From Phallusia mammillata (taxonomy: Eukaryota): a stretch of DNA of 64,000 bases. The notes beneath the pieces are model-generated. The model made no database searches, was not told the DNA's origin, and saw nothing but the letters and a program-made list of their open reading frames with translations. This document shows positions 1 through 44,500 of this stretch, one piece after another. The DNA lies in contig OZ281494.1 of the NCBI GenBank assembly GCA_965637545.1, positions 13,950,001 to 14,014,000 on the forward strand, given 5' to 3'. The translations under genes and the position numbers were made by a program. Positions within the stretch are counted from its first letter, which is position 1. Every line of letters starts with the position of its first letter.

Positions 1-72
1 ATTTAATGCCCGGGTCAGTTTGTGCAACTGCTCAGCCGAGCATTAAAAACAGGGATGCTCAGCCCATCCCTA
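1..72. mobile_element. Right end of the same hAT MITE (copy A3)
   Basis: TIR GCCCATCCCTA 62-72 followed by ATACAAAC. Confidence 0.75.
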
Positions 73-958
73 ATACAAACTAGTGTTCAAAAGGGTATCC
101 AAGAAAGAAAATTTGCTTATTTTTTGAAATGCATTAAATGGTAGAAAACACGAATTCTAAAACCGGTACAGCTTAACACACTACTGGTGACACAATAGAC
201 TTCGAAAAACAACAAAATTAGTATGGAGATGGGAATGTTCCAGACATTAACATGAGACGCTTGGTGTTGATCACACAGAACATTTGCAGTTTTGGCTAAT
301 TTCTATTTAAGTATTACATATTTTACTTACCGGCATAATTTCACCAGATATTTCATCCACAAACATCTGGGAAAATTAAAACTCTGTTTAGAAATCTTGC
401 TTTATCCTGTACTGTATGGCAGAGACAGATCAACACAGCCACAAACTAGTTTCTTGTTTCTTATGCCCAATTTGACTGTGCAGACACTGTGCCTTTATAC
501 TGTTCAATGCTTCGAAACTTGTGTTTAAAACGAGAATGCATTTTGGATGGCATGATTGTCTGTGCTAGCCTGAATGATTGCTTTAGCGATTTTTAAACAT
601 TTTTTTATGCAAGTCAATTTAGCCATGCCAATGCATTCAAGTTTTAAACAACTCCTGCACATAACTGGGCTGCATTACAAGACTGCCTGCCATCCCAAAT
701 GCACACCTCAACACAACTTTCAAAACAAGAACAGCGCCACACAATACATTTGTCAACATAAAGTGAACTCTATTGCAAACAACCAACAGGGGCAGAATGA
801 AGGCTGGTAATCACACACAATTCTAAGTTTAGAAAATGAAAACAGGCGATAAACCTTTAAAATATTTAGTACAAAAATTGCCTAGTAGCCATGCGCAGTA
901 GTCAAAGAGCTGAAAAAAAGAAAATAAACGAATACTATTTAATAGCAGGAACATCGCC

Positions 959-41500: not shown

Positions 41501-44500
41501 TTAAGTTACAGGCGGAGTGCATTTTTAGTTAAAAAAATATTTTGTTTTAGTTGGGCTGTGGTGATGAGCACATTATACTGCCTGTTGATTTAGATGCAAC
41601 AGCAGTACTTTTATTATCACCATGGGTTTTCTTTTCCCCCAAGGCAAGTCATTTCAAGAAATTGATTTTCTTAATGATGGTAATGGGGGCTAAATTTGTT
41701 CTTCAGTAGCTAGAAATGCGACTGTACCAGTTTACGATCTGATATTATATACAACTGTTGTCTCATACTAAGTCTCAGGTGACTCATGATTATAGTATTC
41801 CACACACAGTCTTGTAATAGTTGTCTTTTTGATTTTTATTAAGTGTTTTTCTTACCCTTCTTCGGGCAAAGAACTGGAGTGAATTTCTTCAATCAGCTTA
41901 CGGGGAGTTTGCAAACGTTTAATTTCATCAGCATTAACACTTGAAATTTTGCTCAGCGTTGGAATATGCAGGTTTAAATTGAAAAGGTCCACTTCCTGCA
42001 AGTTAAGTCATACACATTAAAAAAACGATTGACTGATTTACAAGGATATTTTACAGTTGTGTATATCCTGGATATCAAAAATATTGTTGGAAATTATTAA
42101 GTTCAGCAATGTCACAATAGACATTCTGTGTGGAGAATTTCCCTACACTGTTCCTCCAATACGTTACATGCAAGCTGATGGATTACAACCAACATGTCTT
42201 TGACAGAGGGTAATTTACTACAATAACATGCCAGCTACCAGTAACATATGCTAAAAAACCTGGTTAACTGCACTATACCTCAAATGGTCCTTTCTCTAAA
42301 GCTTTGTAGACAATGGAGGGAACATTGAGCTCAACAGGATGTGTCACAAATGGTGAAACAGTTGGACGAGGCTCAAACAAGTTTGGGTGATTGCATACTT
42401 TGCGGAGCTGCATCAGCACATTAATGACACTCATAAAGTGGCCACCTGCCAACGTGTCTTTAGTCCTAAAATTGTAAAAATGAATTGTTACATATTGACA
42501 TTACAATGCATGGGTATATTCCACACACTGCCATAGCCTATTATGAAGAAGCTGATTTTAGATTGTTCCGACAGACACCAGTAACCAAGGCCTGGCCTCT
42601 TTTAATACAATCTTTTTATTGAAACATATAGATTGGTTGTACTTACGATGCTTTAGACATGAAGTCTTCATAAAGAAATCTTTGCCTCTTTGACAAGTGG
42701 CATTTCACAACATGTTCGTATTTGTTGGGCATCTGCTTTTCAACATCCTTTTTTATACGACGAAGAAGAAATGGTCTTAGTACCTACAAAAAATAGATTA
42801 AGTTATAATTTTGTGTCAAAATTGCATTAAAACTTGCTCAATCGCAAAAGAATTGAATAATTGTTAGAATTACCTTATGAAGTCGACGCACAATCTTCTC
42901 ATTGAATTCCTGAGCACCTTCAATCATTCCAGTCATTGGGTTTGAAAACCATTCCTATAACAAAAAATATTTAAAATCATGTTTCAAAGACGAAGATTGT
43001 AGCACAAACGCTTGTTTACCTTAAAATCTTTGTGTGACTGAAATACTTGAGGCATAAGAAAATGCATAAGTGACCAGAGTTCCATTAAATTGTTCTGTAA
43101 CGGTGTACCAGTCAATAATAACCTTCGTTGTGAGTTAAAGTTTAGAAGTGCTTGCCAGCGTTGCGATTTGAAATTCTTGATGTTTTGCGCCTGAAGAGTA
43201 ACCAAACACAGATAGTAAGCATAAATACTTAAAACTTGACTAAAAGACTAATGCCTCTGTAGTTTGGTGAAAGAAAAGCAATGCAAGGTGAAGTGCAGCA
43301 GTGAGAGCGTGACAAACAAAGCACACTATCAAAGTTGCACTTTCTTTGCACACTTTGTACATACATATATGGTTTGGTTCAGCGACCTAGTTGATGTTGG
43401 CACACATTATAAATTCGTGCAACAGCAAAAATATCATCACAACCCATTTGTTATCAGTAGGTTTAGTGAAAACCCAAACTTACTTCATCCAGAATTAGGT
43501 ATCGCCACTTTTTTCTTCGAAAACTTGTATGGTCTTGTATTACCAACTTGTATGATGTGATGCACACATGAAAAGCATTGCTCTTTGTCCAACCAGTTCG
43601 CTTGAGCTAAATTGAAAGAAACAAAGATGCAAAAAAGCCAACACAGTAGTTCTATTTTTACCTTGGATCAGGGCATTGTCTTTTAACAAAACCTTAAATT
43701 TTGATAACAGACTATTTGTAGAGGTGCAAACTTTACTATTTGGTAAATGTCTGACATTGACACATTAGGAATTTGTAAAATAAAATACCTTTCGCTCTTT
43801 TTGTGATCCATAATAGGTGAGGATTTTAAAACCAGGAGCCCATTTCTTGAACTCCATCTCCCAGTTAAGCATCACACTGGTAGGGACAACAATTAAATGT
43901 GGACCCCAAACACCTAAACAAAAAAAATCAAACTTTTTAAGAATTATCTTTCAGCAAAACACCTTAAAACCTACTTAAAAAGAAAATCAAGCAGTTAATG
44001 TACTAAACCTTTTATCCCATACCACCACAAAACTGATAATATGGGAGTAAAGAGGCCAGAGTTAATGTTTGAGGTATGAGCACTAATCACTATGCCACAG
44101 AAGGAGCATAGCAACCGAAGGTACCTCAACTGCATAAGCAAAGAAATTACCAAACTTACCTTTCTCACATGCCAGATGAGAGAGTAAGGCAATGGTTTGA
44201 ATTGTCTTTCCCAGGCCCATTTCATCAGCTAAAATACCATTTAGTCTTTTTGTGTACATTGTAACAAGCCAATCAAGACCGATGTGCTGATATTCTCGCA
44301 GTGTGTGCCTTAGTAAGTGAGGTATAGTGGTCATCACCTGAGAATCAACAACGAAAGTATTTAGGTAAAAGCATAGAGCCAATAAATGATAAGCTGCAGA
44401 CAGTGCACACTGTTTCGACCTATAAGGTCTCATCAGTGCGGCTGGTGACGAGAGATCGGCCGCATTGGCTAGTGTAGCCATCTCTCGTCACCAGCTGCAC

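Follow-up and report, generated by a model that had tools for sequence, protein, structure and literature searches.

Probable recent tandem amplification of the promoterless, snoRNA-bearing 3' part of the SRCAP/domino gene in the ascidian Phallusia mammillata

The window analyzed here is a 64,000-nucleotide stretch of the genome of the ascidian Phallusia mammillata (assembly GCA_965637545.1, contig OZ281494.1, forward-strand positions 13,950,001 to 14,014,000). Its minus strand carries the single ascidian orthologue of SRCAP/EP400/domino and tandem copies of the 3' part of this gene, with numerous intronic small nucleolar RNA (snoRNA) loci. The balance of the sequence evidence tips slightly towards a very young, real tandem amplification of the promoterless tail of the gene, with extra units that would be decaying as coding sequence and would be mostly silent. 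That the tandem duplication is real is considered very likely, and four is likely to be the true number of units. A first-pass annotation of this DNA had already proposed a tandem amplification of the promoterless 3' part, which has been borne out by a self-BLAST of the window and by three occurrences of the same junction.

The minus-strand open reading frames of the window matched EP400_N, the start of SNF2-rel_dom and Myb/SANT, and protein searches led to ascidian sequences, one match being 'helicase SRCAP [Phallusia mammillata]' (CAB3266557.1, 2620 amino acids, hereafter P0133). Exons were located by aligning three public proteins (P0002, P0013 and P0133) piecewise to the window, as separate pieces and not as a joined model, and domain positions were mapped from the Pfam coordinates of P0013. 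P0133 was placed on 63 exon pieces from 49655 to 26519, most of them 100% identical. As in SWR1-type remodellers, the gene has an HSA domain and a SNF2 ATPase whose lobes are set apart by a long insertion ahead of Helicase_C. The main features of the gene and the array are listed below; negative positions lie upstream of the window.

48696-48313, minus strand: HSA domain, outside the unit.
42279-42464, minus strand: PFE exon, the last exon outside the unit, which holds the end of SNF2 ATPase lobe 1 and ends CCA TTT GAG.
38395-37852, minus strand: Helicase_C, inside the unit.
33853-35616, minus strand: large exon, from which the long isoform exits at a donor near 35488.
26516-26518, minus strand: stop codon TAA of the long, SANT-containing isoform, whose reading frame ends at 26519.
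26542, 26520, 26370 and 25852, minus strand: sense-strand 5' ends of AATAAA signals.
25839-42266, minus strand: unit A1, 16,428 bp, the copy joined to the 5' half of the gene and hence its functional 3' part (self-BLAST and four-way alignment).
9386-25838, minus strand: unit A2, 16,453 bp, promoterless.
About -7536 (contig position 13942464) to 9385, minus strand: unit A3, 16,922 bp, with its right 9,385 bp inside the window.
About -22503 to -7537, minus strand: unit A4, 14,967 bp, wholly upstream of the window.
25838/25839 (25831-25846): A2/A1 junction, where the intron end of one unit is joined to the 3'-flank end of the next.

In the self-BLAST the sequence recurs in direct orientation about every 16,453 bp: 1-25838 and 16454-42266 are 99.44% identical, and 1-9385 matches 16454-25838 at every base. 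Alignment of A2 with A1 (9386-25838 with 25839-42266) gave 90 difference events. A 2-kb probe from the unit found four sites genome-wide, every one within the array and none on other contigs, and the addition of the 40 kb upstream of the window resolved four units head to tail in a four-way alignment, with lengths of 16,428-16,922 bp for A1-A3 and a shorter A4. The earlier estimate of about 2.6 units is thus replaced by four. The junction sequence is identical at 9385/9386, at 25838/25839 and at the A4/A3 boundary. As first described, the unit begins 12 nt into the intron after the PFE exon (donor GT 42278-42277, unit end 42266); its other end (25839) was measured at 677 nt beyond the long-isoform stop, in agreement with the approximately 680 bp proposed. 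The trinucleotide TTA is common to both original breakpoints (the leftmost flank and the intron end of the unit), which suggests a microhomology-mediated first duplication.

The unit contains the inter-lobe insertion, lobe 2, the large exon and the long-isoform exons with SANT. It lacks the promoter, HSA and ATPase lobe 1, which ends in the PFE exon, so that the claim of the first-pass annotation that extra units add no full-length ATPase was upheld. When read through, the large exon stops at 33853-33855 (short isoform) with a C-terminal motif that is conserved in Clavelina. The four AATAAA signals are distributed from just upstream of the long-isoform stop to the junction, between the intact gene and A2-A4. 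The messenger RNA-derived P0133 is identical to A1 at five out of five diagnostic replacements (Q1009, H1019, S1022, E1091 and T1988) and contains a 21-bp segment (36105-36125 in A1) absent from A2 and A3. It departs from A1 only by a 4-amino-acid insertion, also present in A2 and A3, and by I2497 (M in all four units), departures that look like ordinary allelic variation in another animal.

The extra units differ in their state of decay. No frameshift or stop was found in any mapped exon of A2, which is distinguished from A1 by a 21-bp in-frame deletion (19663/19664), a 12-bp in-frame insertion (20208-20219) and five amino-acid changes. A3 has a 1-bp deletion causing a frameshift in the exon equivalent to 28943-28857 (about contig position 13946009) and a private miniature inverted-repeat transposable element (MITE) of 456-470 bp at -6205..-5750, bounded by terminal inverted repeats and flanked by a target duplication of 8-9 bp. 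About a thousand candidate sites exist for the family of this MITE, which has inverted ends of TAGTGATGGGACG type; some of these are 100% identical, among them a copy on another chromosome. A4 carries a 2-bp deletion and frameshift in the exon equivalent to 30243-30055, a private 1,380-bp insertion of another abundant mobile-element family (many copies at 88-98%) and a 2.9-kb deletion that has removed eight exons, including those of Helicase_C, together with 4 of the 13 snoRNA loci. This deletion arose by recombination between the 173-bp paralogues 39980-40152 and 37095-37267. The two inserted elements represent two very young, abundant mobile-element families. The earlier remark that A2 and A3 look identical applies over window positions 1-9385 and does not extend to the whole unit: A3 and A2 differ in its first 3 kb, by the MITE and by the frameshift of A3.

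Variant sharing among the units is mosaic: at some sites A4 agrees with A1 and A3 with A2, at others A4 agrees with A3 and A2 with A1, a pattern which unequal exchange and conversion produce. A phase-shifted block was also detected, positions -3990..12320 being repeated at 12463..28773 with two single-base differences in about 16.3 kb and a perfect core of 12,599 bp. In the patch 41761-41915, A1 departs from A2-A4 at about 35 positions and by three small indels, the rest of the unit differing by about 0.4%; the patch covers part of the exon 41995-41855 (eight synonymous and three replacement changes) and about 100 nt of the next intron, and has the appearance of a conversion tract or of a divergent allele that was captured. 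A coding microsatellite of (GCAGAT)n type (36670 and 20208-20219) gains or loses 'ADAD' in an acidic exon, the longer form being present in A2, A3 and P0133 and absent from A1 and A4.

The favoured explanation would proceed as follows. A single TTA microhomology-mediated duplication, as the junctions indicate, may have joined the point 677 nt past the stop to the point 12 nt into the intron after lobe 1, and unequal crossing-over between units, in keeping with the mosaic pattern, would have given the four units as assembled, the last event being very recent to judge from the two base differences of the phase-shifted block. A1 alone is connected to promoter, HSA and lobe 1, and it makes the protein; A2-A4, placed downstream of the poly(A) signals of the gene and lacking a promoter of their own, are decaying as coding sequence. 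The extra units are presumed to be largely silent and the array to be a copy-number variant that is almost neutral and probably polymorphic, a phenotype arising only through leaky read-through followed by ordinary splicing and assembly of small nucleolar ribonucleoproteins.

The introns of the unit are rich in snoRNA loci. A search of the window with Rfam at gathering thresholds gave no matches, and a permissive scan gave 23 weak matches, 22 of them on the strand of the gene and nearly all to snoRNA families, which served as leads only. Box C/D loci were called from boxes, terminal stems and guides compared with the 18S, 5.8S and 28S ribosomal RNA (rRNA) of this same genome. H/ACA loci were called by a structural scan for hairpins, H box and ACA, in which pockets and rRNA targets had no part. 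Thirteen intronic loci were found per full unit, one per intron (six C/D, four H/ACA candidates and three H/ACA-like elements), so that the earlier figure of about 14 was a fair estimate, one above the present count. The C/D loci are solid and the H/ACA loci less so. The C/D loci of the unit are the following.

38511-38575, minus strand: U27-like a, with a 13-nt D' guide pairing with 18S around A28; Rfam SNORD27 scores, reported with the U27-like pair, of 32 and 29 bits, below threshold.
36459-36523, minus strand: U27-like b, paralogue of U27-like a, 18S around A28.
27560-27622, minus strand: U44-like, with a D guide pairing with 18S around A161; Rfam SNORD44, 28 bits.
40408-40494, minus strand: snR60/Z15/Me28S-Am982 type, with a D' guide pairing with 28S around position 1032.
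38105-38166, minus strand: C/D snoRNA with boxes and a 5-bp stem and no clear rRNA target, 70 nt from the 3' splice site.
36770-36833, minus strand: C/D snoRNA with a D guide pairing with 18S around C313, compared with Clavelina.

Boxes, a stem and a guide of at least 10 nt were all present in U27-like a and b, in the U44-like locus and in those at 40494-40408 and 36833-36770. The preferred place of intronic C/D snoRNAs is some 70-80 nt ahead of the 3' splice site; the distances found here were 65, 68, 70, 71 and 82 nt, with 136 nt for U27-like a. The U44-like snoRNA, located 71 nt from the 3' splice site, has its boxes and a terminal stem of 7 bp, and its duplex spans 17 nt with a single mismatch, 12 nt of it being perfect; it exists in four identical copies, with none elsewhere in the genome, and its guide is present twice in the Ciona gene. 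The U27-like snoRNA has a Clavelina orthologue and seven copies in the genome, only at this locus. Syntenic orthologues with conserved guides occupy the same Clavelina introns: the 20-nt guide block of 40408-40494 is identical there, and 32 nt of 38105-38166 are conserved at 94% in the syntenic intron. The H/ACA candidates and H/ACA-like elements, whose cross-species matches are short, are the following.

42080-42215, minus strand: conserved H/ACA-like element in what remains of the first intron; Rfam SNORA38, 22.5 bits.
41554-41690, minus strand: H/ACA candidate with two hairpins, H box and ACA; 25 nt at 92% in the syntenic Clavelina intron.
41142-41277, minus strand: H/ACA candidate from the structural scan, the only snoRNA locus with copy-diagnostic bases.
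39556-39688, minus strand: H/ACA candidate by structure only, with a near-identical paralogue at 35865-35997.
35865-35997, minus strand: H/ACA candidate from the structural scan, near-twin of 39556-39688.
39980-40152, minus strand: H/ACA-like element of 173 bp, with a 96% identical paralogue at 37095-37267.

The element at 42080-42215 aligns with a Clavelina intron (22-nt match), and its counterparts in A2-A4 lack an upstream donor within their own unit. In the candidate 41142-41277, sense positions 41236-41235 read AC in A1 and A4 and GT in A2 and A3, and 41207 is G in A1 and A in the rest. Three snoRNA-type elements are doubled inside one unit in different introns (36459-36523 and 38511-38575, 35865-35997 and 39556-39688, 37095-37267 and 39980-40152), a consequence of an older round of intragenic snoRNA duplication. 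Outside the unit, the structural scan gave H/ACA candidates at 48241-48123, 46879-46755 and 44130-43996; the conserved element 45919-45835 shares 20 identical nucleotides with Clavelina, and possible C/D snoRNAs lie at 46201-46128 and 43441-43380. The whole gene hosts about 20 snoRNA loci, candidates included. A weak Hammerhead_3 match of 21 bits, below threshold, was also obtained at 44407-44455.

The array of four units brings this part of the gene from 13 snoRNA loci to 48, each extra unit holding 9-13 intact intronic snoRNA genes. The exon map of P0133 and the intron positions confirm that the loci have kept their flanking exons and splice sites, as the first-pass annotation had stated. 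The U27-like and U44-like families, which were searched for genome-wide, are confined to this locus, so that their gene copy number is truly multiplied. Among copies, 1.33% of intron sites were variable, against 0.49% of exon sites and 0.36% of the sites in snoRNA segments, the last figure being 3.7 times lower than that of introns (P = 0.001); 10 of the 13 loci show no difference between the units that hold them, and no snoRNA segment contains an indel. Taking this low variation as a mark of selection on the extra snoRNAs was considered and rejected. Exons are similarly depleted of variants even in the disabled A3 and A4, the deficit persisting among variants private to the broken A4, and since exons match the snoRNA deficit where coding constraint is gone, no selection on the extra snoRNAs can be deduced. 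Much of the variation between copies probably consists of allelic polymorphism that was inherited, or stems from conversion by the functional copy.

A similar duplication was found in another ascidian. The best named match of the large exon was a Clavelina lepadiformis protein, in whose cluster a RefSeq 'uncharacterized LOC143461824' accompanies a pair of neighbouring, near-identical gene models named 'Helicase C-terminal'. In this species a 15,619-bp unit is repeated directly behind a full 2527-amino-acid gene at about 99% identity, in two separate assemblies (GCA_961645235.1 and GCA_947623445.1, OX392444.1), and the duplicates are annotated as separate 'Helicase C-terminal' proteins of 864-991 amino acids (LOC143461824, CAK8680541). 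The left breakpoint of the Clavelina unit falls in an intron between the ATPase lobes, one intron downstream of that of Phallusia, and the unit extends a few hundred nucleotides beyond the gene; the microhomology is TTCT instead of TTA. The second copy has lost 7.4 kb with the long-isoform exons. The 7.4-kb block that it retains matches the first copy at 98.9%, with five snoRNAs unchanged, and shows six synonymous and six replacement changes followed by a 2-bp frameshift that removes the conserved C-terminal motif.

No such repeat was found at the gene in Ciona intestinalis, where the next gene starts 1 kb behind its 3' end. An ancient shared duplication kept alike by concerted evolution was rejected, because Ciona has none and because the breakpoints and microhomologies of Phallusia and Clavelina differ; the two duplications are therefore independent and recent. 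They are the main argument for some advantage or local propensity. The Ciona gene contains in its 3' part a 41-nt minisatellite of about 15 or more repeats (L010:36546-37419) and a pair of 168-nt segments (16551 and 19977), 97% identical and 3.4 kb apart, that may be snoRNA paralogues. With respect to gene neighbourhood, a USP7 orthologue (MATH, UCH, ICP0-binding and C-terminal domains) is the divergent neighbour of SRCAP/domino in Phallusia (52193-59156, plus strand). USP7 is also the upstream neighbour in Ciona intestinalis, there on the same strand as the domino gene. No conserved synteny with Clavelina was found downstream of the array.

Compared with known systems, the array most resembles young 3'-partial tandem duplicates of the copy-number-variant type in its head-to-tail order, single junction sequence, 3-nt microhomology, identity above 99%, expansion and mosaicism by unequal exchange, and promoterless copies that gather frameshifts, deletions and transposons; as in these duplicates, the parent gene has stayed intact because one breakpoint lies beyond its 3' end. 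Unlike them, the Phallusia fragment includes 13 functional-looking RNA genes, which depend on a host transcript and not on promoters of their own, so that copies that are dead as coding sequence could still matter; in addition, nearly the same gene region was duplicated independently in a second ascidian. The Clavelina duplicate shares with the array its start in an intron between the ATPase lobes, its end past the gene, an identity of about 99%, a preserved snoRNA block and frameshifted coding sequence, but has two copies instead of four, the TTCT microhomology and no long-isoform exons in the second copy. A further comparison is offered by human EP400, a protein-coding host of SNORA49 (PMC12824223): both are SWR1-type remodeller genes with intronic snoRNAs, one per intron, those of C/D type lying about 70 nt upstream of the 3' splice site, but Phallusia has about 20 loci instead of one, of U27-, U44- and snR60-like families. 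A literature search for papers on domino as a snoRNA host in Drosophila gave nothing useful.

Several observations weigh against the favoured reading of a young and mostly silent array. Copy number and junctions are known from one assembly, and the newest unit could be one assembler loop too many, which the two base differences oppose. The independent duplication of nearly the same part of the gene in Clavelina would be an unlikely coincidence under strict neutrality. Both the low variability of the snoRNA segments in comparison with introns and the loci left unchanged across units would also fit selection on extra snoRNAs. In addition, ascidians tolerate polycistronic transcription (PMC1488885), and by this analogy read-through into A2 may be considered not far-fetched.

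These observations lead to the alternative proposed by the first-pass annotation, a snoRNA-dosage cassette in which read-through from the promoter into A2-A4 and splicing of their introns would release snoRNAs and enlarge the supply of guides found nowhere else in the genome, selection would keep or expand the array, and a gene fragment would become a non-coding host. This alternative is regarded as doubtful. It would be favoured by the presence in each unit of 13 intronic loci whose flanking exons and splice sites are intact, by the restriction of the U27-like and U44-like snoRNAs to this locus, by snoRNA segments that are the least variable class and free of indels while A3 and A4 exons are frameshifted, and by the snoRNA paralogues within the unit, which may reflect an older tendency to gain copies in this host. 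The snoRNA-rich block of Clavelina, duplicated independently and with its five snoRNAs identical between copies despite the coding frameshift, points in the same direction. A precedent is SNHG14, the transcript downstream of SNURF-SNRPN, in which tandem intron arrays of SNORD116 and SNORD115 are read from the upstream gene in mammals (PMC11608373). Its layout, exon-intron repeats each with an intronic snoRNA, located downstream of a coding gene and dependent on its transcription, is what the dosage idea requires. However, the SNHG14 unit measures about 1-2 kb and contains one orphan snoRNA and non-coding exons, and the array is old and of proven expression, whereas the Phallusia unit of 16.45 kb was recently coding and carries 13 different guides of rRNA type; in Phallusia, moreover, poly(A) signals separate the gene from the array. 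Other points against the dosage cassette are the position of four AATAAA ahead of the junction, the agreement of the transcript-derived P0133 with A1 at the substitutions and at the 21-bp indel, the loss of snoRNA loci from A4 and the absence of such a duplication from Ciona. The exon variation deficit, nearly equal to that of the snoRNAs with disabled copies included, probably reflects inherited alleles or conversion from A1 and not selection. Somewhat less probable again is its fuller form, the birth of a non-coding snoRNA host array in which reading frames are lost while 9-13 snoRNAs are kept and expressed by read-through, with dosage selection acting independently in Phallusia and Clavelina.

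A misassembly, which the first-pass annotation asked to be excluded first, is also improbable, and its wholesale version is opposed by the private transposons, frameshifts and deletion in the sequence. Such an artefact would consist of a false haplotype duplication of the whole array or of one extra pass through the repeat, the true number then being three. Heterozygosity is high in ascidians, and assemblies of such genomes are known to contain false duplications. The identity of A2 and A3 over 12.6 kb, with two differing bases in about 16.3 kb, is in line with an artefact. However, no runs of N were found in the 104 kb examined (the window and the 40 kb upstream), and one junction sequence occurs three times in differing variant contexts. 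The private mutations of A3 and A4, including insertions with target duplications, indicate units with independent histories, and at least three distinct versions, two of them disabled, cannot derive from the two alleles of a single essential gene present in one copy. Both base differences of the newest pair involve states consistent with other units, and only this phase-shifted pair could be open to the account of an extra assembler loop.

Use of the extra units for protein, whether by splicing of the PFE exon to them as alternative 3' cassettes or as operon-like, lobe-2-only cistrons trans-spliced to a spliced leader, is very improbable: it would be allowed by the absence of frameshifts and stops from the mapped exons of A2, by the spliced-leader trans-splicing and operons of ascidians (PMC1488885) and by the annotation of the extra Clavelina copy as its own gene for an 864-amino-acid protein, but A3 and A4 are frameshifted, A4 lacks eight exons including Helicase_C, and the Clavelina copy has lost its conserved C-terminus by frameshift, with replacement changes equal in number to synonymous ones. 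An operon-like layout was likewise rejected, since Ciona operons have no intercistronic DNA, the acceptor directly abutting the upstream poly(A) site (PMC1488885), unlike the gap seen here, where the first A2 acceptor (25566) lies about 280 nt past the last AATAAA and about 950 nt past the stop.

The origin of non-coding snoRNA host genes and the adjustment of snoRNA copy number are open questions. The SRCAP/domino gene of Phallusia is the sole home of several conserved guides for rRNA modification, and its amplification is recent enough for every step to be read, from the breakpoint and unequal exchange to the first frameshifts and the first transposons. The four near-identical copies will confound annotation of both the gene and the snoRNAs that it hosts. 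Should the extra units be silent, the array would be an ordinary young copy-number variant. If they are transcribed, it would be a natural case of a coding fragment becoming a snoRNA host, with Clavelina as an independent replicate and Ciona, which has no duplication, as a natural comparison.

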